IMG/VR virus record: IMGVR_UViG_3300028800_000001
Coordinates: 263,296 to 327,295 of that record
Direction: 5' to 3' (one strand)
Length of the DNA stretch: 64,000 nt
The notes under the pieces are model-generated. The model did no database searches and was not told where the DNA came from. It saw nothing but the letters and a program-made list of their open reading frames with translations. The translations under genes were made by a program, and so were the position numbers. Positions 1-16,626 of this stretch are shown piece after piece. The first letter of the stretch is position 1, and every line of letters starts with the position of its first letter.

Positions 1-220
1 GACTTTCGCGCAACCATTTTTCTAGTGCATTTTGATTGCCTTGATATGCTTTCCAGGCATCTCTGGCACACAGAGAAATTAAGGGCATTGCTGGATAGAG
101 TGTTTTCGTCTGCCGATCAAGCACCCGACCGCACGGAAGGTTTTGCCAACGTGGATGATTCTTCTCTTCATCATCCACCAGATACACATTTTCGTTTCTG
201 AGATATCCTATAATTTTCAT
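1..220 (-). CDS. Small partner (putative immunity) protein, truncated by window edge
   Basis: Hand translation from ATG at 220: MKIIGYLRNENVYLVDDEEKNHPRWQNLPCGRVLDRQTKTLYPAMPLISLCARDAWKAYQGNQNALEKWLRES...; paralog of 2172..2420, 11896..12174 and 13008..13220. Confidence 0.75.
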   Translation of the reverse strand, partial: MKIIGYLRNENVYLVDDEEKNHPRWQNLPCGRVLDRQTKTLYPAMPLISLCARDAWKAYQGNQNALEKWLRES

Positions 221-240
221 ATTTCTTTCTTCTTTCTTTT

Positions 241-1029
241 TTAACAATTGTGGAAGCGATACGGGATCGAAGCCGCATCTAGCTTATCAGTGATTGCTTT
301 GGTTGCATACTTACGCTCCATGAAGACCACTTCTTCAATGTGCTTCACGCGTAACCCCTTGTGATACTGCACCTCTGGATAGGAACGCACCTGCTGCACA
401 CTGGTATAGGAGAGGACGGTGTTGAGGTAACTGGTATCCACTGCTCGGTGATCAGGCGCGGCTACTGGCATTGCCACCAGTTCCATATAGCCACCAAGAG
501 ATGCCTTTCCCAGGCTGTCATCAAACGTAAAGGTCGCTTTACGAGCCACTACATCACGCTTGAACTTTACGGCGATTTGGCCGTACATGCCAACGCTATC
601 ACGGCTTCCTCCCAGCTCACCGTCTGGACTATTGGTCATATATCCGTAGACCGGACGTTTGGTTGGCTCCATATCTTCTGGATAGGAGAACATTGCCAGC
701 TCAAACCTTGCGCGTCCGTCAGGATGATACGAGCCACAAGAGTTCCCTGTTTCAAACTGTGATTTGAAGCGTCCTTCCTCAAGAATCTTTTCGAAGGCCG
801 TAGAACGAACACGCATCCAAAGACCACTTTCGTCTACCAGCTTTTTGACGTGGGCGTCTACCAGCTTTAAAAAAGCTTCAGCCGTGATGCCACGATAATT
901 TGCATGATATTTGACGGTATTCTCAGCATCCTTGTCATAGACGGCCAACATCTTGTCAGAAGGGCGAACATCTTTCAGACGATTGGATGCACCAGGAAAG
1001 CGTTTTGTCGTTGCAACAGCGGTACCCAT
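241..1029 (-). CDS. DUF3626-like protein (putative ADP-ribosyltransferase-fold effector), no KYN leader
   Basis: RFKSQFETG, RPVYGY, MYG, TFTFDDS, YPEVQYH motifs; AGGAG RBS. Confidence 0.7.
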   Translation of the reverse strand: MGTAVATTKRFPGASNRLKDVRPSDKMLAVYDKDAENTVKYHANYRGITAEAFLKLVDAHVKKLVDESGLWMRVRSTAFEKILEEGRFKSQFETGNSCGSYHPDGRARFELAMFSYPEDMEPTKRPVYGYMTNSPDGELGGSRDSVGMYGQIAVKFKRDVVARKATFTFDDSLGKASLGGYMELVAMPVAAPDHRAVDTSYLNTVLSYTSVQQVRSYPEVQYHKGLRVKHIEEVVFMERKYATKAITDKLDAASIPYRFHNC

Positions 1030-1089
1030 AATAATCTCCTTGAATTAATTATTTTTTTATTTTCCCGCGTAAATCTCTTTACAAAATTA

Positions 1090-1143
1090 ATTATATGCCA
1101 CTAGTATGTAAAAGACAAGCTTTTCTTCTATGAATATTCAGAA
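1090..1143 (-). promoter_or_regulatory. Sigma70-type promoter with conserved upstream 13-bp element
   Basis: Minus strand TTCTGAATATTCA-N12-TTGTCT-N17-TATAAT. Confidence 0.65.
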
Positions 1144-1161
1144 ATACAGAAAAGTGGTACT

Positions 1162-2103
1162 TTACGCATGTGGGTTTTTTGCACGATAGGGAATGCCCAA
1201 TGCTTTCAGCTTTTTTACGACTGCGGGTTTGATGTCAGAGCCGTTCTCAAAGACGACTTCAGCAATGTGAGACGTGTTGACGCCACCATGATATTGTGCT
1301 TCAGGGTACGTAGGAACTTCAGCAAGACTGGCATACTTGAGAGGGCTGTCATATTTGAGTGCTGCGAAGCCTGTATGATCTGGCTTTGAGAGTGCAGAAG
1401 GCAGCAAATAGCCAGCAGAAGAGAGTGAATCGTTGCCTGTCCAGGTTGTGTTGTCTTTTATACTCTCTTTTAAGCGTACGGAGACAGAGCCGTACATATC
1501 AACGGTGTCACCCCAACCGGCCTTTGTGGGATCAGCACTTTTGAGGCGTCCATCGCCGTCAGCCGAGAGATAGCCGTATATCGGACGATCTTCATCTTCA
1601 GTTTTCATTTGGTCGTAGCCAAAAAGGTCTTCTTCCACACTAGCGCGATGCCAAACATCCAATAATCCGCCAGATTTACCGGTTTCATGTTGTGATTTGA
1701 AGCGACCATCTGTCAACACCTTGCCGAGTATTTGTGGACGCACTCGTATCCAGGGCTGTGCATCCTTAAAGAGATCAACTGCTTTTTGATCAAGCGCTTT
1801 GGTGTAGTCTTCAACGCTCATGCCAGCTTTGGCTGCTTTAAATGCAAAGACCGTGGCCTTATTGTTGTTATACTTATCAATGATTGCTTGTGGTGGTTTG
1901 AGCTTTTGTAAAATCTTAGGCACAAGGTTATTGGGATGCAGTGGATTCTTCGGTCCTGGCGTTCTGGTGCCATCGCGTGCCACAATCAGGTGCGCTTCTC
2001 CTGCGGTAGAAAAGCGTCCAAGATGATCATGATGTGGGTTGTACTTCTCTTGAAGTTGCAGCACAAGACGTTTAATCAGCCGAATGTCTTTTTGAAAATA
2101 CAT
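1162..2103 (-). CDS. DUF3626-like effector with KYNPHH..G.F leader
   Basis: EKYNPHHDHLGRFST leader; RFKSQHETG, RPIYGYL, TWTGNDS, YPEAQYHGG. Confidence 0.72.
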   Translation of the reverse strand: MYFQKDIRLIKRLVLQLQEKYNPHHDHLGRFSTAGEAHLIVARDGTRTPGPKNPLHPNNLVPKILQKLKPPQAIIDKYNNNKATVFAFKAAKAGMSVEDYTKALDQKAVDLFKDAQPWIRVRPQILGKVLTDGRFKSQHETGKSGGLLDVWHRASVEEDLFGYDQMKTEDEDRPIYGYLSADGDGRLKSADPTKAGWGDTVDMYGSVSVRLKESIKDNTTWTGNDSLSSAGYLLPSALSKPDHTGFAALKYDSPLKYASLAEVPTYPEAQYHGGVNTSHIAEVVFENGSDIKPAVVKKLKALGIPYRAKNPHA

Positions 2104-2171
2104 ACAAATCTCCAGGCAGAAAAAAGTGTGGTTGCTTTTTATTTTGTGTGAAGATTTGTATGAACGAAGTT

Positions 2172-2420
2172 TTACGAAGCAGGAATGATTTTGACACCTT
2201 TGAGCAATTCTTCTAGCTTGTTTTGGTCACCATCATACTTTTGCCAGGGATCACGTGCTCCCAGCGATACTAAGGGAAGGGGTGGATACAGTGTTTTACT
2301 ATTGAGATCTAACACACACCCATATTTCAGGTCTTTGTTTCCGTGTTCTGGCACGTCGGCTGAGAGGACATAAAGATTGGGATCGTCAGGATGCGATGCA
2401 ATGATTGTTTGTTTTCCCAT
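2172..2420 (-). CDS. Small partner (putative immunity) protein
   Basis: G.VLD...K.LYP.....L..R..W..Y.G.Q..L.E.LK pattern shared with three paralogs; AAGGAG RBS before ATG 2420. Confidence 0.7.
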   Translation of the reverse strand: MGKQTIIASHPDDPNLYVLSADVPEHGNKDLKYGCVLDLNSKTLYPPLPLVSLGARDPWQKYDGDQNKLEELLKGVKIIPAS

Positions 2421-2436
2421 TGGGGGTTTCTCCTTA

Positions 2437-2883
2437 CTATGCAACTTTCTTTACTACTACTAATAACAAATTTTTGAGTGCCAAAATTTCTGCATCCTGT
2501 GCTTCAAGATGCTTTTTTAGCTCTTCATTTTCATGAAAGATCTTGAGCGTGGTTTGATACGTTTCTTCCGCTTGCAATTGCTGATGTCTTCCTAACACGT
2601 CTTGCCCGACCGATAAAATTGATAAGGCAACTAATTGGATGAATGTCTGGCTTGTCCACTGCACATACTGATTGGCGGTTGCATGAAAACCAGGAAAGCC
2701 AAGGATGGCAAGAAATACAAAGAAGTAAGCACACCACATGTTGCTGAGCACATTGGTTACAAAAACCGCCACACGTTGATTGAAGCCACCTGCTTTGCGT
2801 TCTAATGCTTGCAACACATTGACGTTACGCACTTTGTGTGGGTGTTCTTTGTGTTCATATAAAGTTACTTTGTGATCACTCAT
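2437..2883 (-). CDS. DUF1003-like membrane protein
   Basis: Two hydrophobic segments, QLVALSILSVGQ motif, C-terminal coiled coil. Confidence 0.55.
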   Translation of the reverse strand: MSDHKVTLYEHKEHPHKVRNVNVLQALERKAGGFNQRVAVFVTNVLSNMWCAYFFVFLAILGFPGFHATANQYVQWTSQTFIQLVALSILSVGQDVLGRHQQLQAEETYQTTLKIFHENEELKKHLEAQDAEILALKNLLLVVVKKVA

Positions 2884-2896
2884 CGCTTCCTACTTC

Positions 2897-4234
2897 TTAC
2901 GAATAATAAAAGGTCACACCAGGGCAGTTGGCTACCCCATTGGAAACAATGCCTACGGAAGCACGACCACCTCCACCAATGCTATAAATGCTGCCAACTG
3001 TAGCATTGGCTGGAATAGAAAGCAGCTTTGTTCCACTATTGGTGGTGGCATTGTCATAGATATCAAGCTGCGCGGTTCCGGTCGTTGTCACTACTGCACT
3101 CCAAAGATAGCCAGGAGTGCCTTTGACCACCACATTACCTGCGGTATTGGCAGCTTGCGCAGCGTTCGCCGTCGCTCCAGCCGTGAGCCATGGATTCGTA
3201 TTTTGTGTATTTCCAGGCTGCACTGTCCAGGTTCCTGCTTGCGCACTTTGCATCCCACCAGGAGCAGAACTACTGGTGTAGAGCTCTAGTGTCGCGTTTG
3301 CGGTGCCGCTGGTATACGCCGTCATGCGCACACGAAAGTAGCGAAACGTCACCGCTCGTTCATAGATGACACTCACTGTATTGGTAGTAGTTGAGAGTAG
3401 TGAGCCACTGGTAACATTGGTCATGAGCACATTGACAAAAGCAGCGCCATCATTAGAACCTTGAAATGTGAGTGTTCCTGAATAGGCACTAGAACTAATA
3501 TGAATACTCAGCCATTTATACGCACTGACATCTGTAGAGGGAACCAGATCAGCATTGAGTGATGCGGCGCTCAGCCCTGTTTGTTCAGTAAAGTTTCCTC
3601 GTACTGCCTGTGAACCAGCGGCGTCTATCATTGCTTTATTTGTGCCAGCGCTATCAACCACAGTGACTCCACCGACAAGATTGCTTCCAGCAGGAAGGCT
3701 AGAGAGCAAACTAATATCACCGGTTGCAGCGCTTGCATTTAAGGTTACCGTGAGTGTTTCTGTACTTCCAAGCACACTTGCACGCACACGTATCTTTGTC
3801 AGCCCTGCACAATTTCCTCCTAGCTCCAACGGGCCAGGGCCAACAATGCTTTGCACTGATGTGCTGGTCAAAGAGCCGCCCACTTTTATCCCTTTGGCGA
3901 TCCAGTTTGTGCCATCGACACTGCCATCGACCACGATTGTTGTTGCAGAAGTAAAAGTGCTCAGTGCCACAATTTCTGCTTTCCAGCTTCCTTGACCAGC
4001 ACCAAGAGAAAGGACAACGGTGCCACCAGCAATCGGTGTTTGCTGCGTGCTTTGTGCAGCAGTAATCGTACCGCTTACGCTGAGATCGCTCGTGCTACTG
4101 TAAAGTGGGTTGACAGCAACTCCCAACGCATTATCAGACGTATCCACAAGCACTGTTGGGTGCACAATCATTACCGTACTGTTCGGGCCGGTGTCCACGC
4201 CTGGGACGGTTGGCTCTGTTTGATTAATAGGCAT
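2897..4234 (-). CDS. Virion structural / fibre-like beta-rich protein
   Basis: Ser/Thr/Gly/Ala-rich; two repeated beta-sandwich-like units (GSVDGTNW / GSNDGAAF ... RVR); N-terminus nearly identical to that of 5370..5822. Confidence 0.55.
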   Translation of the reverse strand: MPINQTEPTVPGVDTGPNSTVMIVHPTVLVDTSDNALGVAVNPLYSSTSDLSVSGTITAAQSTQQTPIAGGTVVLSLGAGQGSWKAEIVALSTFTSATTIVVDGSVDGTNWIAKGIKVGGSLTSTSVQSIVGPGPLELGGNCAGLTKIRVRASVLGSTETLTVTLNASAATGDISLLSSLPAGSNLVGGVTVVDSAGTNKAMIDAAGSQAVRGNFTEQTGLSAASLNADLVPSTDVSAYKWLSIHISSSAYSGTLTFQGSNDGAAFVNVLMTNVTSGSLLSTTTNTVSVIYERAVTFRYFRVRMTAYTSGTANATLELYTSSSAPGGMQSAQAGTWTVQPGNTQNTNPWLTAGATANAAQAANTAGNVVVKGTPGYLWSAVVTTTGTAQLDIYDNATTNSGTKLLSIPANATVGSIYSIGGGGRASVGIVSNGVANCPGVTFYYS

Positions 4235-5368
4235 CTATTGTATCCTTCCACTGGTGTGCCGCATTTCCCTGATATAAGGAGAGCCCACCACTGCTTTATA
4301 GAGTGAGTTGAGAAAGAAGTTCAGCCAGAGATTTTGATAGGCTACGTAGCCTGCGGGAAGTGTGGGATGAATATTGTCCACATCAATTAAGCTTTGATGC
4401 GTAGAAAAATACGCATAGAGATCAGGGCCAAGAATGATGGACGGAAAACTGGCTTTGAGTGTCAAGATCTTGGTATTAATTGTAGGCGCATTCGCCAGTA
4501 AATTCGTCGTATTGCCCCAACAAATTGTCTTTGGTAATACCACCGTTTTCCCAGCACCAATCACGGCATTGATCATGGTGGTCATGTTACTGATAAAATT
4601 CGTGACGTACGTTCCGCCCTGGTTTGCATCATTGGTACCGTAGAGGAGTCCCACATATTTACCAGGAAAGAGTGCAAGCCACGTCGCAATATTGGCCGCG
4701 CCTTCGACTGCCGTAAACCCACCAATGCCGCCATCCTCCATCAAAGGAAAATTGCTGACCTGGGCATTGATTTGTGCAGGGAGTGTGGTATCGGTGTGCA
4801 AAAAACCTTGTTGCGCAATAGAGTCGCCATAAAAGATCCAATCATCAGCCAGCCCATTTGCTTTATGCACATCCATATTGATCTGCACATTATTGTTAGA
4901 AACCGATCCATTGATTGCAGTGATGCGAATGCGCACCCATTTGTACCCAGTGAGATTCACACTATGCTGACGGCTGTGATAGACGTTTCCGGTTACCGTC
5001 GCAAGCGTTATCCATCCACTTGAGGGTAAACTTCCACCGGCTGCACTATTGGCATCAATCGTGTAAGCAGCAGGAACGTTATAGGAATTATTGCTAATCA
5101 AGGTCGGATCATAGGCACCCGTTGAGGGATCGTTATACCAGACCACAACAGCCGTCGTGAGACTACTCACACCAGAAAGATCATAGGCCAGATACACGGC
5201 TTGCGTCAGCGTGCCACTGTCTGTATTTCCTGTGGGTGCTGTGAGGCAACGCCAATAATTGCCATACGTGCTGTCGTTGGCTTGCGAGGCTGGAAACGCA
5301 CCTGAAAAGTCATCATTGGTATAGGCAGGCACACCACGTGAGATCAGGGGCATTGGAGCTATCGTCAT
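4235..5368 (-). CDS. SGNH/GDSL hydrolase with N-terminal carbohydrate-binding-like domain
   Basis: FYGDSI, GIGG, YGTND, DNIHP catalytic blocks. Confidence 0.8.
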   Translation of the reverse strand: MTIAPMPLISRGVPAYTNDDFSGAFPASQANDSTYGNYWRCLTAPTGNTDSGTLTQAVYLAYDLSGVSSLTTAVVVWYNDPSTGAYDPTLISNNSYNVPAAYTIDANSAAGGSLPSSGWITLATVTGNVYHSRQHSVNLTGYKWVRIRITAINGSVSNNNVQINMDVHKANGLADDWIFYGDSIAQQGFLHTDTTLPAQINAQVSNFPLMEDGGIGGFTAVEGAANIATWLALFPGKYVGLLYGTNDANQGGTYVTNFISNMTTMINAVIGAGKTVVLPKTICWGNTTNLLANAPTINTKILTLKASFPSIILGPDLYAYFSTHQSLIDVDNIHPTLPAGYVAYQNLWLNFFLNSLYKAVVGSPYIREMRHTSGRIQ

Positions 5369-5369
5369 A

Positions 5370-5822
5370 TTAATTCCAAGCCCTGACTACAATATTGCTC
5401 GCGCTTGTTCCATTGACGTTGCTAATGCCTGGAGTATAGAGATGCAGCGCTGTTACCTGCACATCCAAAAATAGCGTTTGTCCAGCAGCGAGTACTGGGC
5501 TTCCTGCGGTAGCTGTAACATCTAAGTCCCATTGGATATTGCTAGCCGTGTTATTTTGCACCATCAAATGTGAGATAACGGTGGTGCCAGCGGCTCCCCA
5601 TTTAAAACTATAATCAGTGGTAGCCGCCGTTGCCGCGCCATTAGAGGCGTAGGCTGCAACGTAGCCTGATTGGACGGTTTGTTCAACAAAGAGAGGGTTG
5701 GCAACAATCCCAAAGGCATTATCAGAGGTATCTACAAGCACGCTTGGATGCACAATCATCGTGGTGCTATTGGGGCCAGTATCGACACCAGGAACGGTTG
5801 GTTCAGTTTGGTTGAGTGGCAT
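5370..5822 (-). CDS. Small structural (decoration-like) protein
   Basis: Shares ~45-aa N-terminus MP.NQTEPTVPGVDTGPNST.MIVHP.VLVDTSDNA with 2897..4234. Confidence 0.55.
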   Translation of the reverse strand: MPLNQTEPTVPGVDTGPNSTTMIVHPSVLVDTSDNAFGIVANPLFVEQTVQSGYVAAYASNGAATAATTDYSFKWGAAGTTVISHLMVQNNTASNIQWDLDVTATAGSPVLAAGQTLFLDVQVTALHLYTPGISNVNGTSASNIVVRAWN

Positions 5823-5896
5823 TGTTTTCTCCAGTACAAATCATTGCAACAGAAATGCTATTTTTGTTTGTACTGAAGAATTTAGGAGAAATACAG

Positions 5897-6814
5897 TTAT
5901 TTTTGTTCGTGGCCTTGCAGGGCAAATGCAGTGCGATCTTCCCCAATGCAGAGCCAGAGATTTTCAAACAAGAGTGCTTCGGCAGGAACACTCATTGTTG
6001 GAAAAGCAGCATCTTTGTCAATATACGCTAAAGTGCAGTGTGGTGTAAAGCCATGTGTGTTGTCAATAGGAACAGGCAGAGACGTTCGAAGCTGTTCACG
6101 CCACTCTGCTATCCCTGGAAGGTCTACAGAGGCGTAAAACGGCAGCGTAGCGCTCTCTGTGGGGGTGTTTGTGAAGCACCCGATCCCTGAGACAATGCCA
6201 TGTACCGGAACCGCGTTTGTCGCATAGTCACCGATTGCTTTTTTGAGCTGTGCGGAAAGGGCATCAGGAACATTCTCAGCGCTTCCTAGTATCATCAAAG
6301 TGACATGCAGCTCTTGTGGCTCACATTTCCCTTCACAGTCCAGTGCTATTTTTTGTGCGGCATCTGGCTCCAGATAAAATGCCACCATGATTGGCAAGGC
6401 CGACACAGGTTTAGGTTGCTCTGGTGTTTCTTCTTTGCGTAGCCACAGCGTCTTTAAAAAAGAAACATGCTCTTCGTTGGCGCGAAAGATTGGCGTCTGC
6501 AAAAAGTCTTTGACAGCTATATCGTGTGCTGCAAGATAGCCAATTAATTGTTCTTCATTCTTGACAGGCAACGTCCATGTCGTCTCTTCAAAGATGCTTT
6601 TCTTCTTTGCAGGTTCTTCATCTGAAAGGGTTGCGCGCTCCTCTTCTGGGAGATCATCAAGATTTTCACAAGGCAGCACACGATTCAAAAAATCTTCACG
6701 TGCTTCATCAGTCAATTGGTGCCGTTGCAAAAACTTGGCAACGCGGCGTGAGAGATCAGGTGACATATTGTCAGGTACACTGCTTTTTGCACTATCGTCT
6801 TTGAGTATTTTCAC
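5897..6814 (-). CDS. 2H phosphoesterase (LigT / Acb1-like) with N-terminal helical extension
   Basis: Two HxT motifs: LHVTL and PHCTLAY. Confidence 0.8.
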   Translation of the reverse strand: MKILKDDSAKSSVPDNMSPDLSRRVAKFLQRHQLTDEAREDFLNRVLPCENLDDLPEEERATLSDEEPAKKKSIFEETTWTLPVKNEEQLIGYLAAHDIAVKDFLQTPIFRANEEHVSFLKTLWLRKEETPEQPKPVSALPIMVAFYLEPDAAQKIALDCEGKCEPQELHVTLMILGSAENVPDALSAQLKKAIGDYATNAVPVHGIVSGIGCFTNTPTESATLPFYASVDLPGIAEWREQLRTSLPVPIDNTHGFTPHCTLAYIDKDAAFPTMSVPAEALLFENLWLCIGEDRTAFALQGHEQK

Positions 6815-9800
6815 AAAGTGTCTCCATTCAAAATGGTTTTGCCTACACGGGTTGCTGTTCTATTTAAAACTACCAGAAAGTCAGCACGTTTATTGATCGA
6901 ATCTACATGAGAGCGATCAACATAAATGGCATCATAGCCCTTCATTGCGGCGTAGCGACCAGGATCGTTGGCAAGATCAAAGAGCCGATCAATGCGGCGT
7001 GACTCCGTATACTTCCCAGCATCATCCAAGGCTTTGCCCCGTGTACGCAAATCATTCTTGTAGTCAATCCACTCATTGATTAAACGTCCCTTCTCAATTG
7101 CGGTGGTATTTTTGAGTACGGACATATGCAGCACATCATCGCCATAAGTAGCGGCCACATGAGACGCACTATATCGGTCAGATACTCCTTCTGTGGTAAG
7201 CGCGGTATAGGTTCCGTTGCCATAGACGCCAAGTCCTGCAAAATAGTGCCCACTTTGATAGCTTGCAGCATAGCCCAGGCCGTCAGAGGGATCACCACCA
7301 TCATCCACACCGCGATAGAGCTCAGCCTCACCGTCTTTAATGTGCTGCGCAAGCACATTATCTTCAACCACATGTGGAGGGCCATCAAACCCCTGTGCTT
7401 TATAGATTTCCTGTAAGCAGGCGTCGGCATCCGTGGCGCTACTGCTTCCTGGGATTGGGCCTTTGCCTGTATCCATATAGTTTTTGACGTAGGGAATATC
7501 TTCAGGGTTGCTATATTTGGCTTCCGTCTTCTGAAATTCCTGGTTATCAGGGTGTTTCGGTCCTTTCTCGCGGGTACCATCAGCATGCACAAGCAGGTGT
7601 GCATTTTCTGTCGTGGTAAATTTCCCTACGTGATCATGCGCAGGGTTGTACTTTTCTTCAAACTGCTCAACACTTTTTGTTCCTGAGACGCGGTAAGAAA
7701 TGCCTTTGGCTTTGAGTTGTGCCTCAAGCGGTGGTGTAAGCTCATAATCATTATGAAACACAATTTCTGCAATAGTTGAGGTGTTTAGACCACCATGAAA
7801 TTGTGCCTCTGGATAGCCGCGTACATCACTCACGTTTTGGTAGGTCAGTGGATCTGGACCATGCACACTAAAATTGGTATGATCAGGATGCAGCATGCTT
7901 CCTGGCAAGAGATAGCCACCCATACCAAGTGAGTCATCACCTGTCCAGGTGGTTTTTTGCTTCACCTCTGGTTTGAAGCGAACCGCAACGCCTCCATATT
8001 CATCAACAGAGTCGAACATGCCATGCCGCGTCTGTCTCAGGCTTGCGCCGTCAGGATGATCGCTTAGATAGCCGTAAAGTGGACGCTGCTCTTTGGCAAG
8101 ATCGTCTGGATAGCCAAAGAGATCATGTTCTGCTTCAGAACGTGAATCGTGATCCATAATTCCCGCAGAGGTATTGGTTTCAAATTGCGACTTGAAGCGT
8201 TCATCATCCAATATCTTTGAAAGAATTGTTGGGCGTACCCGCATCCAAGGTTCTGCATTCTTGAGCAGTTCCACGGCTTTGTCATCAACGGCTTTGTTGT
8301 ACTCTTCAGCCGTCATGTTATGCGTCTGCGCATGCTTTTCAGCGAACGCTGCACCTTGTATGTCATATTTTTTGAGGACGGCGTCTGGTGGACGCACCTG
8401 TTCTAAGATATCTTTTTTCTGATTATCAGGATGCGCCGGTCCTTTTTCAGTGGTACCATCACGATGCACTAAAAGGTGGGCATTTTCGGTGGTCGTAAAT
8501 TGTCCATTGTGCCCGTGGGCTGGATTATATTTCGCTTCGCCTGTGAGCAGCTCTTGATCACGTGCGGATAAATCTTCTAGCGATTGCACACCCATCAAAC
8601 GATTGAAAAAGTCCTGACGCTCTGCGAGTGTCCAAGAGGCCGCAACAGGGCCAGCAAGAAACTTTTCTACCAGTGGTACTAGATCAGGGGCAAGCGTATC
8701 AGGGATTGTGTTAATGGCTTGATTTTCTGCATCAGTGATTTGATCTTTATGTTCTGGGGTATCATCATCTATTTCCTCGTCATTTTGCTTCTCCTCTGGT
8801 AAATACAATGAAAGATCAAGTGGTTCATGCATCTTGCCGTGGCTGCGATGCCCTGGCTTTTTGCGCGGCACAGGGATAACGCCATGAGCAGGTTTGCCGT
8901 GAGGAGCCGCATGTGGTTTTGCAGCAGGTGCGCCGTGAGCAGCAGCAGGTTTCTTGAGTGGCTTCACGCTCGTTGGCACTGCTGGATGCTTTGGTGGCAT
9001 TCCACCGGTTTGTGACTCAGGGTGTGCCGTAATCTTGAAAAAGTCTTCCCAGGTGGGATTCTTCATTCCAGCTAGCTGATGCAAAATCTCAAAACGTTTT
9101 GCGAAACCTAACGCTGCTTCATCATTGGCTGCATACTCTTTTGAGAGGATCAGGGCTTTGGTTTCTTTGGTGAGAAACTTTCCCAGGATGCCATGATCAA
9201 TGCTGTTGCGCAGAAAACTTTTTCCAATGACTTTCATCAGAAAGCTATGCGACTGGATTGCAATATCTTTTTTGACGAGTGCCGAAGAAAGTTGTGTCAG
9301 GTTAATCTTGCCGGTCTTTTGATTGAGGGTATAGTGTCCAGATTGATCTTGTTTCATGCCAAGAATATATTCCAACATGCCGACTTTGGTCACCTGATCA
9401 GGGGGCATTTTCTCCATTGCCTCGGTTGCCGTCTTATCATCCAGGGGAGTGCTTTTTACATCCTCAGAGACCACTACGGGCTCTTTGTCCACTGTTCCAC
9501 TGTGGACTACAGGCACCGTATCAGAGGCTCCTACCAGATCTGCAATGCGGCTTGCACCGGTCTGTGAAAAGGCAATGCGCGTGCTACCAGTGGGCACAAT
9601 ACGATACGTCTTGCCATTAATGTTGGCGGTATAGACGCCGTCAGCCCCTCTGGTCATTGCCCCTTTGTCGGAGAGGGCTTTCGCAATGTGGGCAGGCATG
9701 GTGGTGAGCACATCAGCGTGCACACCGCCTGCGCCATCATCAGCACCGATGAATTGTCCGGTCGTAGTGCTGTGATTACGGTTATATTTTTCTTCAGGAA

Positions 9801-9870
9801 GATAGAGTGTAAGGTCAGGTTTCTCCTGTTCTTCTATCTCTTTACGAAAGAGAGCATAATGATACTTCAT
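6811..9870 (-). CDS. Multidomain polyprotein: degenerate kinase-like domain, DUF3626-like domain and C-terminal ART-like domain, separated by KYN motifs
   Basis: Three KYN..H...G.F motifs; central RFKSQFET/RPLYGYL/YPEAQFHGG; C-terminal LYRGV...GVYGNGTY...GYDAI...VVLNR. Confidence 0.7.
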   Translation of the reverse strand: MKYHYALFRKEIEEQEKPDLTLYLPEEKYNRNHSTTTGQFIGADDGAGGVHADVLTTMPAHIAKALSDKGAMTRGADGVYTANINGKTYRIVPTGSTRIAFSQTGASRIADLVGASDTVPVVHSGTVDKEPVVVSEDVKSTPLDDKTATEAMEKMPPDQVTKVGMLEYILGMKQDQSGHYTLNQKTGKINLTQLSSALVKKDIAIQSHSFLMKVIGKSFLRNSIDHGILGKFLTKETKALILSKEYAANDEAALGFAKRFEILHQLAGMKNPTWEDFFKITAHPESQTGGMPPKHPAVPTSVKPLKKPAAAHGAPAAKPHAAPHGKPAHGVIPVPRKKPGHRSHGKMHEPLDLSLYLPEEKQNDEEIDDDTPEHKDQITDAENQAINTIPDTLAPDLVPLVEKFLAGPVAASWTLAERQDFFNRLMGVQSLEDLSARDQELLTGEAKYNPAHGHNGQFTTTENAHLLVHRDGTTEKGPAHPDNQKKDILEQVRPPDAVLKKYDIQGAAFAEKHAQTHNMTAEEYNKAVDDKAVELLKNAEPWMRVRPTILSKILDDERFKSQFETNTSAGIMDHDSRSEAEHDLFGYPDDLAKEQRPLYGYLSDHPDGASLRQTRHGMFDSVDEYGGVAVRFKPEVKQKTTWTGDDSLGMGGYLLPGSMLHPDHTNFSVHGPDPLTYQNVSDVRGYPEAQFHGGLNTSTIAEIVFHNDYELTPPLEAQLKAKGISYRVSGTKSVEQFEEKYNPAHDHVGKFTTTENAHLLVHADGTREKGPKHPDNQEFQKTEAKYSNPEDIPYVKNYMDTGKGPIPGSSSATDADACLQEIYKAQGFDGPPHVVEDNVLAQHIKDGEAELYRGVDDGGDPSDGLGYAASYQSGHYFAGLGVYGNGTYTALTTEGVSDRYSASHVAATYGDDVLHMSVLKNTTAIEKGRLINEWIDYKNDLRTRGKALDDAGKYTESRRIDRLFDLANDPGRYAAMKGYDAIYVDRSHVDSINKRADFLVVLNRTATRVGKTILNGDTL

Positions 9871-10493
9871 TCGGACTCCTCAACTTCAGCCAGAACGCGC
9901 TCCAGCGCAATTAATTGTTCATTGGAAAGTTTTTCCAGATCAATTGTTAGCTTGTTATGGGTGACGCTTTCTGAGAGCCCTGGAATGTTCTCCATCGCAA
10001 TTTGTTCCGTTGCTGCACCACGTGCCACACGCTCCAGGGAGGAAGCTTCTTTAAAGAGCATGACAGCAGCAGTGGCTCCAAAACGTTTCTCTTTAATCAG
10101 ATCAGTGATTTGCTGTGCTGCTTTAATTGCCATACCAGAGCCGAGTGTGGCATGATTCTCATTCATCTTCTCAATTTCAGCATCACGCTTGCGCTTTTTC
10201 TCTTCTAATTGCTCTTTATCATAGCTACGCACCTGCTCTTGCCAGCCATAGGCACTGCTCCAAATGCCTATTTGCTTATGTGAAGAGCTAATTAATTTTT
10301 CTCTCTTCTCGTCCGTGACCTGTGGTGGAAAAACGCCACTGGCTAGCAGCCGTTCTTGTTCAGCACGCAGCCGCTCCTCCACCAATTGTTCAGCAAGCCT
10401 GCGCAAGCTTCTGGTGTAGCCTTGTTGTTTATAAAGTTCTAATGCATAGAGTGAACGGGTGGTTTCTTCACCCTTTGGCAGTTTACGCGCCAT
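9867..10493 (-). CDS. Putative terminase small subunit
   Basis: N-terminal RSLRRLAEQL helix, WSSAYGWQEQVRSYD motif, C-terminal DLEKLSNEQL typical of TerS-like proteins. Confidence 0.5.
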   Translation of the reverse strand: MARKLPKGEETTRSLYALELYKQQGYTRSLRRLAEQLVEERLRAEQERLLASGVFPPQVTDEKREKLISSSHKQIGIWSSAYGWQEQVRSYDKEQLEEKKRKRDAEIEKMNENHATLGSGMAIKAAQQITDLIKEKRFGATAAVMLFKEASSLERVARGAATEQIAMENIPGLSESVTHNKLTIDLEKLSNEQLIALERVLAEVEESE

Positions 10494-10610
10494 ACTTGTC
10501 TCCCCAAGAGATAGTTTTCTTTTTCGTATTTGGTATTTCTCTTTGAGAAGATTTGGAGATTTGATGGGGGATTAATTTTTGAGGTTGTTTCTTTTTCTAA
10601 GTATTTTTTA

Positions 10611-10850
10611 TTACATGGTCTCAATAGAGAGTTCGTTGTCCTTTTTTTTAATTTCTTTTGCCCATAAGACACTGGTGAGCGTTTGCAACAAATAGAGGAG
10701 AATCTTTTCATCAGGAAGATGTGTTTCCTCTTTTGCACCAGCAATAACGTTGCGTAATTCTTCCTGTTTTTCTCCTGTATAGGTAAACACCGATGCAGCA
10801 AAAGAAATAGTTCCGTATACCGTTGGCCCGTAGCCAATTTCTAGCGTCAT
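10611..10850 (-). CDS. Small hypothetical protein directly after the kinase-like effector (possible partner)
   Basis: 79 aa ORF, AGGAG RBS. Confidence 0.55.
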   Translation of the reverse strand: MTLEIGYGPTVYGTISFAASVFTYTGEKQEELRNVIAGAKEETHLPDEKILLYLLQTLTSVLWAKEIKKKDNELSIETM

Positions 10851-10865
10851 ATCATCTCCTTTTTT

Positions 10866-11816
10866 TTAATCAGTAAAGAAGGAAGCAGGTTTTCTTTTTT
10901 TGGCGTCCCTACTCTCCCATGGAATTGTTGCAATGACCGCATTCAATGCATTCATCGTCGGATCTTTTTTGCTTTTACTCAGTAGTGCAATTGCATGCAA
11001 ACGTAACTCCAATGCTTTGATCGTACGATCATTCGCTCCAGTGTAACGTGCCATCCGTACAATTTCGTCAGCATGCTCTACAAAAGATCTGAGTACTTTT
11101 TTATTAAATGGCTTCTCGTTTGGATCAGTAGAGCGGGTACCTGTCGCATCTTTAAAAGGGGGCGTGGTGTAATTCGTTGCAATCTTTGACTCAAAGTCAT
11201 TGGTAATTTCATCAGTGCGCAAAGCAAGTCCCATATCGATAAGTTTTAATCCCTTCTCGCCTTTTTGTGTTGAATCAACTAAATAGTTCCCTAAATGACG
11301 ATCACGATCATGAACGACATACTCATAGAGACGAAGTTTCGCATAATTCTCTATACTTAATTTGCTCACCGCAGCCACGCGCTGTTCTTTTGAGAGTGCA
11401 AGCATTGGTGTTCCCTCAACCCACGGCTGGACAGTAACATCTTGTCCATTACGTGCCATTTTTTGCACTGGAAGAGTAAAGTCGCTCACTCCAAGCACGT
11501 CAGCCGTCTTCGATGAAAAAACTGCACGTTCTTCCTGATTGGAAATGCCCATTGCGTCTGCTTCATCGCTGTTCTTTTTTACCAAATAGTTTTTTCCAGC
11601 AATGGTTGTCTTGTAGGTTGCATTCAAACTATCGCCACGCCCAAATTGCTGCAATGATGCTGTTTGAAGTTGCCCCTGGCTAGGAAAGCGTTTATCACTA
11701 TTTGGAGTCATATCTAGAGCCGAAGGCGATGACGCAAATCGACCATCTTCCTCATCGTGATAATAATTGTACTTGCGCTGATAGGCATATCTTCGTAACC
11801 GTACGGCTCGCGGCAT
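10866..11816 (-). CDS. PI3/4-kinase / HipA-like kinase effector with KYN leader
   Basis: RKYNYYHDEEDGRF leader; LVKK, EERA, DRDRHLGNYL and LIDMG kinase motifs; RBS before ATG 11816. Confidence 0.75.
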   Translation of the reverse strand: MPRAVRLRRYAYQRKYNYYHDEEDGRFASSPSALDMTPNSDKRFPSQGQLQTASLQQFGRGDSLNATYKTTIAGKNYLVKKNSDEADAMGISNQEERAVFSSKTADVLGVSDFTLPVQKMARNGQDVTVQPWVEGTPMLALSKEQRVAAVSKLSIENYAKLRLYEYVVHDRDRHLGNYLVDSTQKGEKGLKLIDMGLALRTDEITNDFESKIATNYTTPPFKDATGTRSTDPNEKPFNKKVLRSFVEHADEIVRMARYTGANDRTIKALELRLHAIALLSKSKKDPTMNALNAVIATIPWESRDAKKRKPASFFTD

Positions 11817-11895
11817 CTTACATCTCTCCTGATACAAAAGGATAATTAATTATTTATTTTGTGAGTGCGAGACATTTCTTTTTAAAATTAATTAT

Positions 11896-12174
11896 TTACA
11901 TCGTTTCGATATCATGTCTATCTTCTTTTTTCTCAGCCAAACTATCGGCAACAGGGGTTGCATCCTTTAGCCATTCTTGTAGTACGTCTTGAGAGTCGGT
12001 GTAAGGTTCCCACTCTTGTCTGCTTTGCAGTGTCGCAAGGGCATTGACTGGATACAGTTTTTTCTCATCACTGTAGTAGATTTGCCCCAGGTGTTGTGTA
12101 CGTCCATAGAGCATTCCTGTGCCCAGGTCAAGCAGGTAATACCCATCTTCGTCACGTCCAAGTATTTTTTTCAT
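11896..12174 (-). CDS. Small partner (putative immunity) protein
   Basis: GQIY...KKLYP...LATLQSRQEWEPY...QDVLQEWLK. Confidence 0.7.
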   Translation of the reverse strand: MKKILGRDEDGYYLLDLGTGMLYGRTQHLGQIYYSDEKKLYPVNALATLQSRQEWEPYTDSQDVLQEWLKDATPVADSLAEKKEDRHDIETM

Positions 12175-12187
12175 TTTCTTTTCTCCT

Positions 12188-13006
12188 TTAAAGCTTTACC
12201 GTAAATGGAATGCCTGCGCTGTTCAGTGCCTTTTTTATAGGGGCTGTTGGTGCTTTCCCATGAAAGGTAACACTTTTGATATCGCTTGTTGAGACTCCAC
12301 CATGCACCTGTGCTTCCATATATTCATTTGCCAGATCACGTGGTCGCAAGGGATCAATACCGTTATAGAGTGGATAAATGCGACTATCAGGATGCGTCAC
12401 TGGTTGTGGAATGACGCTTTCGTAGTGTCCACCAGAGGTCATTGCCAGTGAATCACCATAGGTCATAGTAGCACGATCTCGTGTTTCTGGCTTTAGTTCA
12501 ACAGCTACGTTCCCATATTGAGAAACATCTGCATCAGTATTGTCTCCATGAGTATCTTTTGAGAGATATCCATAAATGGGACGGTTCTCCACCCCTGCTT
12601 TTGCTTCATCAAATCCAAAGGCACCAGATTCTAGTTTATCTCTTGAATCTTTGGCAACGCTTCCGCCACTCTTGTTTGTCTCGAATTGACTTTTGAAGCG
12701 ACCGCCATCCAATATTTTTTGGAGTGCTGACGGTTTTACTCGTACAAAGAGTCCAGTATCTTTGACTGCATCTTGCGCTTGCTTATCAAGCGTTGCTTTG
12801 TAGGCATCAGGTGAGAGACCATGACGCTCCCCAAAGATTTCGTAACGCAGATGGGTGTTGTCAGCAAACTCAGAGGCCCAGTGCTCTGTAGGATGTACTC
12901 CCAGGCTTTCTAGTGTCTTGCCGGAACCACCCTCAGAAATAAATTCACCATTTGCATCGCTATGCGCATGATTGTATTTCCTTTGGACTGCGTAGCGAAA
13001 CCGCAT
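12188..13006 (-). CDS. DUF3626-like effector with KYN leader
   Basis: Start MRFRYAVQRKYNHAH after GGAGAG; RFKSQFET, RPIYGYL, TYGDS, YMEAQVHGG. Confidence 0.72.
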   Translation of the reverse strand: MRFRYAVQRKYNHAHSDANGEFISEGGSGKTLESLGVHPTEHWASEFADNTHLRYEIFGERHGLSPDAYKATLDKQAQDAVKDTGLFVRVKPSALQKILDGGRFKSQFETNKSGGSVAKDSRDKLESGAFGFDEAKAGVENRPIYGYLSKDTHGDNTDADVSQYGNVAVELKPETRDRATMTYGDSLAMTSGGHYESVIPQPVTHPDSRIYPLYNGIDPLRPRDLANEYMEAQVHGGVSTSDIKSVTFHGKAPTAPIKKALNSAGIPFTVKL

Positions 13007-13007
13007 A

Positions 13008-13220
13008 TTACTCTCCAACCTTCTTTGCCGTCTTGAGCCACTCATTGACTTTTTCTTGTACACCATCATAGGGCTCCCAGGCAGTTCCACGCGTGAGCAT
13101 CGTGGCAATGGATTGTGGTGGATACAAGAGATGTTTCTCTTGATCATAAATCTGGCCCATTTTTTCATCTTCAGTCAGGATGAAGCGTACTCCATCATCA
13201 GAGACAGCAAATATTTTCAT
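13008..13220 (-). CDS. Small partner (putative immunity) protein
   Basis: GQIYDQEKHLLYPPQSIATMLTRGTAWEPYDGVQEKVNEWLK; coupled between two effector genes. Confidence 0.7.
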   Translation of the reverse strand: MKIFAVSDDGVRFILTEDEKMGQIYDQEKHLLYPPQSIATMLTRGTAWEPYDGVQEKVNEWLKTAKKVGE

Positions 13221-13222
13221 GG

Positions 13223-14170
13223 CTATGATGCTCCTGCTACGCTATACGGAATATTTTCTCGTTGTAATAATTTAGTCAGCGCCGCGCTTGGTGCTTTACT
13301 ATGAAAGACAACGTGTGCAATGTGACTTTTTGAGACACCGCCATGCATTTGTGTTTCGGTGTACACATCTTTGATGAGTGAGGTATTTCCTTCTGGACTG
13401 TTATAATTGCTTGCTGCGGTCCCTGTTGGCTTGAGTACTGGATTAGGGAGCATTCGTGGTGCATCCTCACTTCCTCCTTCGTCAAGCGAATCGCCAAGTG
13501 TAAACGTACTTTTTGCCCTCACTTCAGGTTTGAAGCGGATTGCCACATCACCGTAAGCTGAGGCAAAGTTTTGTTCGCCATTTGCACCATCACTTAAATA
13601 CCCGTAAATTGGTCGATCTTCTGACTTGGTCTTTTGATCATAGCCAAACATCTGCTCTTCTTGTTCAGCTCGACTCTCAAGATAGTTGGTCAGTTTGATC
13701 TTATTGGCTCCAATAGCCGCGCCGGTCTTATTGGTTTCGAAGGCACTCTTAAAACGACCATCAGTAAGAATGCCTTGCAGTCCTTTGCTTGATGTTCGTG
13801 TCCATAACTCTCCAGGCGTTACCAGGGCAACAATGTGTGCATCTTCGCGTGCTTTGAGTGCATCAGCCGTGATAGGTTTTCCTAAATCCGTCCATGAGTC
13901 AGCAAAGTTCTTGAGTCGCTGATTGTACGTAGCTTCAAAATTCTTTGTCCAGGCGGCACTCGGATGCACATTTTTCAGCACCGGATCAAGTTGATTGTCA
14001 GGATGCTTTGGCCCCAGCGTTCGCGTTCCATCACGTGCGACAGAGATATGAGCTTCGCCAGCCGTTGAGAACTGTCCCAAATGATTGTGATGTGGGTTAT
14101 ATTTTTGTGCCCAGGCATGTGCCAACATCCGCATCCGTTTCATACGATCATAGAGAAAAATGTCTTCCAT
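13223..14170 (-). CDS. DUF3626-like effector with KYN leader
   Basis: QKYNPHHNHLGQFST leader; RFKSAFET, RPIYGYL, TLGDS, YTETQMHGG. Confidence 0.72.
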   Translation of the reverse strand: MEDIFLYDRMKRMRMLAHAWAQKYNPHHNHLGQFSTAGEAHISVARDGTRTLGPKHPDNQLDPVLKNVHPSAAWTKNFEATYNQRLKNFADSWTDLGKPITADALKAREDAHIVALVTPGELWTRTSSKGLQGILTDGRFKSAFETNKTGAAIGANKIKLTNYLESRAEQEEQMFGYDQKTKSEDRPIYGYLSDGANGEQNFASAYGDVAIRFKPEVRAKSTFTLGDSLDEGGSEDAPRMLPNPVLKPTGTAASNYNSPEGNTSLIKDVYTETQMHGGVSKSHIAHVVFHSKAPSAALTKLLQRENIPYSVAGAS

Positions 14171-15010: not shown

Positions 15011-15386
15011 AATGCTGCTCCTTTAAGAGTTCTAGGATTTGGAGTTGTTGATGATTGATCTTCAGTAAAAGTGCATTTGTCTCATACATCTTTTCAACCT
15101 CTGCGGCTTCAATGGTGTCACGGGCACGATCTTTTCCAGCCTGTCTATTTTGACTCATGAGAATGAGCGGCGAGCTAAACGCTGCTTCTGCTGACATAAA
15201 GAGATTGCACAGAGTAAAGGGGTAACTGTCCCAATGATAGAACCAACCAACACTGTTGAGTAAAAACCAGAGAAAGAGCAACGCTGCCTGAATCAAGATA
15301 AAGTTCCAATTACCTAACGCTTTGACCGCACCATCAGCCAGCCGATCACCCGCGTCATGCGGAAGATGTATATTCATACGCTTCAC
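14991..15386 (-). CDS. DUF1003 membrane protein
   Basis: GDRLAD...G.W.FI, DSYPFTLCNL, PLILMSQNRQ. Confidence 0.85.
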   Translation of the reverse strand: MKRMNIHLPHDAGDRLADGAVKALGNWNFILIQAALLFLWFLLNSVGWFYHWDSYPFTLCNLFMSAEAAFSSPLILMSQNRQAGKDRARDTIEAAEVEKMYETNALLLKINHQQLQILELLKEQHYEGNRQ

Positions 15387-15760
15387 GCATCTGCTCCAAA
15401 TTCTGAGAGTGCTAACTTTGCTTCGTGTTCCTCCACCATGCGTTCAAGTTCTGCGGTCTCAATGCCATGTTCACGTAACATCTCAACCGCATACGTGACC
15501 AGAAAGAAGGCACTATCTAACAGCTTTTTGAGTTGCTCAAGATCATTGTCCATCAAGCGTTCCTCTCTTGACATGAATCCGAACTTTTGTGCATGTTCTG
15601 TTCCATCTTCTCCACGCAACCAGGAAAGAAGAAGTCCAGAAAAATCCTTGACTTCTCCCAGCCCGTAGGGTGGATCAGTGACACACAAATCGATAGAGTT
15701 TGTCTGAAGGTGACGTAAGACTTCTAAGCAATCGCCATGAATGACCGTATCAAGCATCAT
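15383..15760 (-). pseudogene. Truncated N6/N4 DNA methyltransferase remnant fused to unrelated C-terminus
   Basis: IHGDCLEVL...IDLCVTDPPY present; SAM-binding motif absent in only 125 aa. Confidence 0.6.
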
Positions 15761-16626
15761 TTTGTCCTTCTGGTCTTTTTGGTGGGATCAAACCTTTCTC
15801 CGGTTAACTGGCGTTGCATGCGTTCTTCTTCGCGTTCTAAGCGAAAGCGCTGAATACGTTCTATCTCATCACGTGGTGGCAAACATTTCCACATCTGCTG
15901 CATACTGTAGTACACAATAGAATAGCGAAACGAATCCTGTTCCAACTGTGTAATGGGCGTCACACCATGCAAAATGTTTTGGCCGTCAAACATGAGCAGC
16001 GAATTATTACGCAGTTCAAAGCCCAGGCCGTATTCAGGCACCGCAAGATAGCCACCAAGCACGTTGCGTTTAAGCACAATCATGTTTGACCACACATCAC
16101 GAAAGTTGCCTGCATCAAAGTGATAAGGGAGAGGATTATTTTTGTTCACGATGCCAGAGGTGAAGACGGATTCGTCAATCTTCCAATTTTCTAGCACTTT
16201 TTCGGTCATCTCCATGTGTTGTTGATAGAGCAGCGGCGCAAATTCTTGGTAGTAGTGCGCAACTTTGGCCGCATAACTCACAATGATGTCATGCTCATCA
16301 GGATGTTCTACATAACAACTCGTGGCAGTGCAGTAATCACGACGCAGCGTGTTGCGTGGCAAAAAGCCAACGGTGCGTGATTGAGCCATCATGCCACCTG
16401 TGCGTATCTCCAGCTTGTAGTCAATCGTTTGCAGTGCTTTGATCAGCGCGCTGTTATCTTCTTGTAAGAGGAGATAGACAATCTTTGGCTCAGCATTCCC
16501 TGGCTCATAGATCACTGTTGGTTCGCTGATCAGCGTGTCATAGTCTTCGTCTTGCGCATGACGCAATTTGTACTGCGAAAGATCAAGTTGCTTTTTTGTT
16601 GCAATCCTAGTGTAAAGATCTGCCAT
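15757..16626 (-). CDS. TET/JBP-like 2OG-Fe(II) dioxygenase (copy 2)
   Basis: YHFDAGN (HxD), LHGVTP (H), RYSIVYY (R). Confidence 0.8.
   Translation of the reverse strand: MADLYTRIATKKQLDLSQYKLRHAQDEDYDTLISEPTVIYEPGNAEPKIVYLLLQEDNSALIKALQTIDYKLEIRTGGMMAQSRTVGFLPRNTLRRDYCTATSCYVEHPDEHDIIVSYAAKVAHYYQEFAPLLYQQHMEMTEKVLENWKIDESVFTSGIVNKNNPLPYHFDAGNFRDVWSNMIVLKRNVLGGYLAVPEYGLGFELRNNSLLMFDGQNILHGVTPITQLEQDSFRYSIVYYSMQQMWKCLPPRDEIERIQRFRLEREEERMQRQLTGERFDPTKKTRRTK

Follow-up and report, generated by a model that had tools for sequence, protein, structure and literature searches.

What does a phage do with five diverged copies of DUF3626, the family that forms the core of the Salmonella effector SopF (PMC6682159), and what are the small genes that accompany most of them? 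The question is raised by a 64,000-nucleotide stretch of IMG/VR virus record IMGVR_UViG_3300028800_000001 (positions 263,296 to 327,295; hereafter, the window), in which the two kinds of genes are interspersed (Table 1). The record is a complete single-contig virus of 327,295 bp with a 127-bp terminal repeat, that is, a jumbo phage, and the window is its final 64 kb. No deposited phage has a large terminase more than 41% identical to the one encoded here, and the lineage is therefore uncharacterised. The first-pass annotation, made from the sequence alone, described a polymorphic toxin-immunity-like array of five DUF3626-like domains and four small genes, diversified by duplication. The positions of all nine held, all on the minus strand, and the motifs given for the domains were confirmed in our alignment. 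However, the array genes, DUF3626 and small partners alike, sit between the genes for the small and large terminase subunits, so that the element is the head-packaging region of a jumbo phage rather than a bacterial polymorphic-toxin locus, and the counts of five and four apply inside the window only, the genome as a whole containing six DUF3626 genes and five small genes.

Assignment of the DUF3626 copies to the family and fold of SopF is well supported by profile and model comparisons. SopF is an ADP-ribosyltransferase (ART) with an I-Y-E triad, solved as 7DN8/7DN9 (PMC10333799). At the Pfam gathering cut-off for PF12294 (27 bits), three of the five window copies score above the threshold and two fall just under it (22-23 bits); the latter two are clear paralogs of the others, with E values of 1e-150 or better against the paralog profile. 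Searched against the six-frame translation of the genome, the five-copy profile recovered each copy at E 1e-117 to 1e-164. The five domains show 31-41% identity and have in common the motifs RFKS..ET, RP.YGY, YG, T.T..DS and Y.E.Q.H; the nearest relative of the domain embedded in the 1019-aa polyvalent protein is paralog C (53.5% identity). A profile of 34 phage homologues searched against the PDB sequences matched SopF (7DN8/7DN9, E 1.8e-6) in an alignment that pairs RPIYG, YG and Y-x-E-x-x-x-H-G (Y-I-E-A-H-I-H-G). In the AlphaFold model of paralog A (predicted local distance difference test score, pLDDT, 84.4), a Foldseek search of the PDB likewise placed SopF 7DN8/7DN9 on top (E 2.4e-7, probability 1.0, template modelling (TM) score of about 0.45), followed by DNA-modifying DarT enzymes and Tpt1. 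Thus, the ART fold proposed in the first-pass annotation emerged from both the profile and the structural comparison. The residues invariant across the 34 homologues are R167, Y189, Y206, D227, E272 and Q274 (paralog A numbering), and the motif glutamate, E272, falls on the SopF position at which the structure 7DN9, bound to nicotinamide adenine dinucleotide (NAD), has Asp in place of Glu. We infer that the phage proteins are active ARTs with a bacterial target.

The small proteins form a family of their own. Four of the five small genes in the genome lie immediately downstream of a DUF3626 gene, at distances that, with the choice of start codon, vary between a slight overlap and a gap of some 20 nt; the gene at 2172-2420 is located upstream of its neighbour, and its ortholog in locus L008 is likewise upstream of a DUF3626 gene. 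For paralog B, the longest open reading frame, starting at 13168, would overlap small partner A, and the actual start is probably 13045 or 13006, at or just past the end of that small gene. The four window proteins are 25-41% identical and do not vary at the G, LYP, R, W, Y and Q positions; each matches the family profile at E 1e-30 to 1e-38. A full HMMER scan of 1.84 billion representatives yielded 85 matches at E <=1e-3, nearly all of 60-105 aa and a few of them tandem or fused, with a consensus core of G-R-V-L-D, L-Y-P-P and S-I-L-A-R-G-Y-W-E-x-Y-x-G-x-Q and an acidic composition (median isoelectric point 4.9). Pfam produced no match for any of 76 members, PHROGs and PADLOC likewise gave nothing on the small proteins, and the searchable literature, incomplete as it is, links DUF3626 to no phage or partner, in agreement with the earlier statement that no partner family had been described. 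Searches with the model of small partner A (pLDDT 92.7) gave no convincing fold match: in the PDB, the best results were E 0.17 with Foldseek and Z 4.3 with VIA wide, and AFDB clusters and the ESM Atlas offered no convincing one either, the sole match being a homologue from Bacillus phage SP-15 in BFVD. A weak ARGYWEP signature was also seen in Actinomycetia phage DSL-LC01 (E 3.5e-4). The small genes downstream in Mycobacterium phage Tierra, Nodularia phage kac68v161 and Streptococcus phage MissE2 gave hhalign probabilities below 3% and are treated as positional analogues only.

Several lines of evidence tie this family to the DUF3626 ARTs. Outside this genome, at least nine loci have a small gene directly adjoining a DUF3626 gene (L011, L008, L016 and a second contig, L017/18, L019, SP-15, L022, L035 and the P0016 contig). 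Such neighbours occur in two sister-phage contigs, two soil contigs, three IMG/VR phages, Bacillus phage SP-15, a Solirubrobacterales genome and two further metagenome contigs; in the soil contigs, the small gene lies behind a portal-MuF gene and a gene for a 300-aa DUF3626 protein. Moreover, in two proteins (P0060 and P0066; 356 and 1654 aa) a DUF3626 domain is followed by the small domain in a single chain. Partner similarity tracks ART-domain similarity (Spearman 0.60, Mantel p ~0.0006), a figure that is inflated by orthologous pairs from sister phages. Finally, the complex of small partner A with paralog A was predicted with scores of 0.81, 0.82 and 0.79, compared to 0.00 for all three controls; in the calibration, 58 out of 80 complexes of solved structure attained this mark, as did 2 out of 110 mismatched pairs, but the score is the model's own confidence and, with author-supplied alignments, the calibration is only rough, which must be held against it.

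The predicted interface comprises R167, Y189-G190, residues 204-208, D227 and E272 on the ART side, and D26, residues 36-50 and W48 on the partner side, so that the most conserved residues of the partner are set on the catalytic residues of the ART. This modelled geometry favours an occluding inhibitor over a leader chaperone or an activator, and makes the small family the first candidate inhibitor of the SopF-type ARTs. The partnership of the two families and their diversification by duplication were both put forward in the first-pass annotation; the former is supported by the adjacency in other phages, the fusions and the predicted complex on the catalytic cleft, the latter by the paralog alignment and similarity comparison.

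How such enzymes might leave the producing cell is suggested by a leader that most of them carry at the N-terminus. It consists of an amphipathic helix followed by K-Y-N-x-x-H-D-x-x-G-x-F, often continuing to G-P-K-H-P-D-N; in paralog A, it spans residues ~20-60, a helix and then KYNPHHNHLGQF...GPKHPDN. The leader is found three times in the polyvalent protein, preceding each module, and also precedes a kinase-like protein and an Alt/VIP2-type ART (ADPrib_exo_Tox, E 3e-21), while a cousin form heads the four paralogs of the polyvalent C-terminal domain. This arrangement, a constant N-terminal leader joined to interchangeable enzyme domains (DUF3626, ADPrib_exo_Tox, kinase-like and another domain), is that of polymorphic toxins. 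All the leader-bearing genes cluster at the portal(-MuF) or terminase genes, and the leader is limited to this phage clade, with a looser H-P-R-D-x-x-G-x-F in one distant homologue. Pfam detected no MuF or other known trafficking domain in the window DUF3626 proteins; MuF in this phage is fused to an intein-containing portal protein, 60-80 kb from the array. In other phages, homologous DUF3626 domains form one chain with Phage_Mu_F, with Phage_min_cap2 or with the capsid maturation protease, encoded immediately behind the portal gene; head-packaged phage ARTs are a general theme (PMC9503650). The leader may stand in for the covalent MuF fusion as a virion-incorporation signal.

A second concentration of leader-bearing genes is found outside the window, in locus L006 (G000:190000-203000), where seven of them (~2937-12369) lie downstream of the portal-MuF fusion. 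These encode one Alt/VIP2-type ART and four C-terminal-domain paralogs of 330-345 aa with the GRHDQRTHGNRF variant of the leader, and the cluster also holds the sixth DUF3626 gene with its small partner. With the candidate C-terminal-domain paralogs included, the putative ARTs of this phage may number about a dozen.

We lean, cautiously, towards the reading that the array encodes virion-delivered SopF-type host-takeover ARTs that are kept silent in the producing cell by cognate small inhibitors. The evidence presented here for this mechanism is the family membership, the fold, the catalytic residues, the adjacency across phages, the fusions and the predicted interface. Under this scheme, late in infection the phage would make NAD-dependent ARTs along with its head-packaging genes and the inhibitors. 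Each acidic partner of about 75 aa would bind the neighbouring ART, its LYPP...ARGxWE.Y core covering the NAD-binding and catalytic cleft as in the predicted complex; the inhibitor would thereby silence the ART in the producing cell and may also guard that cell from related incoming ARTs. The shared leader would load most of the ARTs into the capsid, with the leaderless inhibitor staying out, and in the next infection the ART would enter with the DNA, as T4 Alt does, free of inhibitor, and modify a host protein or nucleic acid. Enzymatic activity, inhibition, leader-driven packaging and the bacterial target are presumed in this scheme; co-production, capsid loading via the leader and inhibitor-free entry are drawn from context and by analogy. 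Duplication and divergence would have produced six ART-inhibitor specificities.

The location of the pairs in the head-packaging region, together with the predicted binding, would also suit a folding or packaging chaperone, i.e. an adaptor that keeps the ART capsid-loadable and inhibits it only incidentally, and a chaperone role had been entertained in the first-pass annotation as well. Yet the predicted interface lies on the catalytic cleft and not on the leader, leaderless ARTs (paralog D and those of L008 and L022) have partners too, and other leader-bearing cargo families of the same phage come without such a small gene; with the small domain fused, in addition, to ADP-ribosylglycohydrolase and nucleases in capsid-less bacteria, we consider a chaperone unlikely. 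The same cleft contacts bear on the idea that the small protein activates the ART as a cofactor or recruits its substrate as a subunit, comparable to the ARF GTPases that SopF requires as a protein cofactor (PMC10333799). Although adjacency and fusions would suit an obligate subunit, the contacts cover the invariant active-site Tyr, Asp and Glu where NAD must bind, and fusion to an enzyme that reverses ADP-ribosylation argues for antagonism; of all the explanations weighed here, activation strikes us as the least probable.

Toxin followed by antidote is also the gene order of toxin-antitoxin or abortive-infection modules, which would act undelivered in the infected or lysogenised cell, for example by excluding rival phages; ART-based pairs of this kind have been described in phages (PMC9503650), and paralog D, which has no leader, would fit. 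Such modules appear rather improbable given six copies inside a head-packaging region and homologues fused to MuF or capsid protease; among 76 small-family members, no DNA-binding or protease-labile antitoxin domain was detected with Pfam, and the model gave no helix-turn-helix or ribbon-helix-helix fold match of the kind expected for type II antitoxins. The possibility that the small domain binds not the ART but ADP-ribose or ADP-ribosylated nucleic acid, adjacency then reflecting a common substrate, would account for its fusions to PD-(D/E)XK nucleases, REase-ARP and ADP-ribosylglycohydrolase and for the resemblance of the ART fold to the DNA-modifying DarT. The family is acidic, however, its most conserved residues are engaged in a high-confidence heterodimer model, and no fold match to known nucleotide-binding domains was obtained, so that we find this possibility very improbable.

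Returning to silenced, virion-delivered ARTs, some observations weigh against this interpretation. Paralog D, which has a partner, lacks the leader, as does its sister-phage ortholog, so not every pair fits packaging; the meaning of the leader is read from its context alone. Conversely, the DUF3626 domain of the polyvalent protein has no adjacent small gene. Four loci hold a small gene without a DUF3626 neighbour (L033/34, L012-15, L029 and L040/41), and three small-gene contigs are too short to judge. The fused proteins P0060 and P0066 fit autoinhibition or regulation equally with classical immunity. Among individual small genes, P0010, near BrxL/GmrSD and without an adjacent DUF3626 gene, is a counter-example to the pairing.

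Comparison with known systems brings out what is shared and what is not. SopF and the phage copies belong to the same Pfam family and share the ART fold and the Tyr/Tyr/Glu motif positions, but the phage copies are only ~15-17% identical to SopF, lack its N-terminal region, belong to the head module of a phage and must have a bacterial target. SopF, in turn, is secreted as a type III effector, modifies the V-ATPase of eukaryotes and depends on ARF GTPases for its activation (PMC10333799), and no inhibitor partner has been described for it. The MuF polymorphic toxins of temperate phages (PMC5576092) pair a head-associated delivery module and a variable enzymatic C-terminus with a small protective gene directly downstream, a layout that the array shares, with delivery and protection predicted in its case. 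In contrast to these, the ARTs here are separate genes with a short leader, MuF is on the portal protein, the array belongs to a 327-kb jumbo phage with six paralogs, and the partner falls outside the immunity families described in Pfam and the searched literature.

T4 Alt is an ART of the R-S-E clade, and we know of no dedicated inhibitor gene for it. The DUF3626 ARTs are nearer to diphtheria-toxin-like and DarT-like ARTs than to Alt, and the same phage also encodes the leader-bearing Alt/VIP2-type ART. The likeness to Alt concerns the route, under the model in which that ART is made late, loaded into the capsid and injected (PMC9503650); for the DUF3626 proteins, such delivery is our proposal. 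The nearest cultured pair is SP15_270/SP15_271 of Bacillus phage SP-15, both annotated as hypothetical, in which an 80-aa family member (TM 0.82 to the small-protein model) overlaps the start of a 763-aa DUF3626 protein; SP-15 differs in having one pair only, with the small gene upstream. Among type VI systems, the Tre1-Tri1 pair (Ting et al. 2018) reportedly consists of an ART toxin and an immunity protein that blocks the active site by binding to it directly and carries an ADP-ribosylglycohydrolase in the same chain. Two bacterial proteins (L021, L028) join an ADP-ribosylglycohydrolase to the small domain as Tri1 does, with no sequence or fold relation; the difference is that the binding module here is mostly free-standing, 70-90 aa long and phage-encoded.

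These two proteins, from Bacillota genomes, have the small domain at the C-terminus of the ADP-ribosylglycohydrolase (PF03747, E 1e-62), and this fusion ties the domain to ADP-ribosylation. In six genomes of Bacillus, Neobacillus and Virgibacillus, the small domain precedes a PDDEXK_4 nuclease that matches PDC-S26, a candidate defence system in PADLOC. In a Chloroflexota genome, the domain is followed by REase-ARP, which Pfam defines as 'Restriction Endonuclease associating with ARP'. ARG-centred host systems that include domains with a restriction-endonuclease fold have been proposed to counter viral ADP-ribosylation (PMC9503650), and the Pfam REase-ARP presumably corresponds to these domains. 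No DUF3626 gene was found beside the bacterial fusions in the neighbourhoods of these loci. It is conceivable, if doubtful, that the small domain is an ART-recognition module that served first as a phage self-inhibitor and was then captured by bacteria to sense the ARTs that phages inject or to act as a decoy for them. The ADP-ribosylglycohydrolase fusion would block the enzyme and erase its marks, and the fusions to the PDC-S26-related PD-(D/E)XK or to REase-ARP would fire a nuclease on the arrival of a phage ART. As to architecture, the nuclease fusion of the six genomes (L023-L027, L030) is a conserved protein of 430-500 aa composed of a zinc ribbon, the small domain and the PD-(D/E)XK nuclease.

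Pairs of an ART with an immunity protein are already known, as are phage ARTs delivered from the head; what is new is the partner family, its tie to SopF-type ARTs, the six-fold expansion behind a leader instead of MuF, and the bacterial fusions. SopF-type ARTs are widespread in phage head modules and no regulator has been described for them. If the proposed mechanism is true, an active-site blocker of about 75 aa would offer an off-the-shelf inhibitor of these enzymes and a probe of their structure, would explain how one phage can produce several potentially self-damaging enzymes late in infection, and would make the small gene a marker by which such effectors could be located. With its six diverged pairs, this genome provides a natural specificity panel, and the bacterial fusions connect the small domain, in a way open to test, with host systems predicted to oppose viral ADP-ribosylation (PMC9503650).

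Table 1. Genes and domains of the array and related features elsewhere in the genome; positions refer to the window unless another coordinate system is named.
Feature	Position	Strand	Remarks
DUF3626 paralog A, 315 aa	13223..14170	minus	PF12294 37.3 bits
Small partner A, 70 aa	13008..13220	minus	starts 2 nt past paralog A stop
DUF3626 paralog B, longest open reading frame 326 aa	12188..13168	minus	PF12294 47.7 bits; leader KYNHAHSDANGEF
Small partner B, 92 aa	11896..12174	minus	13 nt downstream of paralog B; family alignment and profile
Leader-bearing 323-aa protein	10866..11837	minus	weak kinase-like signal
Terminase small subunit	9867..10493	minus	phrog_6299, E 8.9e-14
Polyvalent 1019-aa protein	6811..9870	minus	leader 1, kinase-like region, linker, leader 2, DUF3626, leader 3, C-terminal domain
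DUF3626 domain of the 1019-aa protein	~nt 7666-8526	minus	PF12294 23.1 bits at residues 548-647, below cut-off
Polyvalent C-terminal domain	nt 6814-7503	minus	common to four paralogs beside the portal gene
2H/LigT-type phosphoesterase, 305 aa	5897..6814	minus	PF13563 E 1.9e-9; phrog_14859; overlaps polyvalent gene stop
Small partner C, 82 aa	2172..2420	minus	alternative TTG start 2444; upstream of paralog C
DUF3626 paralog C, 313 aa	1162..2103	minus	with leader; PF12294 22.1 bits, below cut-off
DUF3626 paralog D, 262 aa	241..1029	minus	sole copy without leader; PF12294 34.3 bits
Small partner D, 77 aa from ATG at 220	1..220	minus	alternative TTG 247; stop 13 nt before window start
Terminase large subunit	just upstream of window start, L007 5558-7135		Terminase_6C
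Sixth DUF3626 gene, outside the window	G000:196339-197301		paralog-profile search of the genome
Fifth small gene, outside the window	directly downstream of the sixth DUF3626 gene		found by family profile

Other cargo-like genes lie within the array. The C-terminal domain of the polyvalent protein had no Pfam match at the protein or genome level and no PDB sequence match, and one of its paralogs matches phrog_16619, a minor head protein. An ART-PolyVal/AcrIF11-like label for this domain came from language-model features only, with no support from Pfam or the PDB sequence search, and is retained as a lead. The same status applies to the kinase identity of the 323-aa protein (PI3_PI4_kinase, E 0.0025, under the Pfam cut-off), which, by comparison of translations, is a paralog of the N-terminal third of the polyvalent protein and of a 326-aa protein encoded just outside the window. 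The 2H/LigT phosphoesterase has in common with the polyvalent protein (residues ~395-440) an acidic linker of ~45 aa, ahead of the catalytic parts in both, which suggests module shuffling among the cargo genes. A Macro domain protein (G000:2449-2760, minus strand, E 1.7e-12) lies, on the circular map, 2.5 kb beyond the end of the window and may strip ADP-ribose in the same phage; given this protein and the 2H phosphoesterase, the phage therefore carries further ADP-ribose-processing enzymes.

A scan for promoters and terminators gave counts near the shuffled expectation and was uninformative. Elsewhere in the genome, inteins split a ResIII/DEAD helicase (window 25984-28560, plus strand) and the portal protein (L006 9487-12369). 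A 791-aa protein (window 33622-35997, plus strand) contains a pro-kumamolisin activation domain (E 6e-22), pointing to a sedolisin-type protease, unusual in a phage. The genes at 15383-17440 (minus strand) look like a DNA base hypermodification cluster, in which a TET/JBP-type 2-oxoglutarate-Fe dioxygenase (15757-16665; PF12851, E 2.8e-16) adjoins a ParB-like protein and a short DNA-methyltransferase-like fragment. Finally, proteins of 445 aa and 150 aa (window 2897-4234 and 5370-5822, minus strand), with a gene for an SGNH/GDSL-type esterase (4235-5368) between them, are nearly identical over their first 40 residues and unlike in the rest, as would be the case for exchangeable fibre or decoration proteins on a common anchor.

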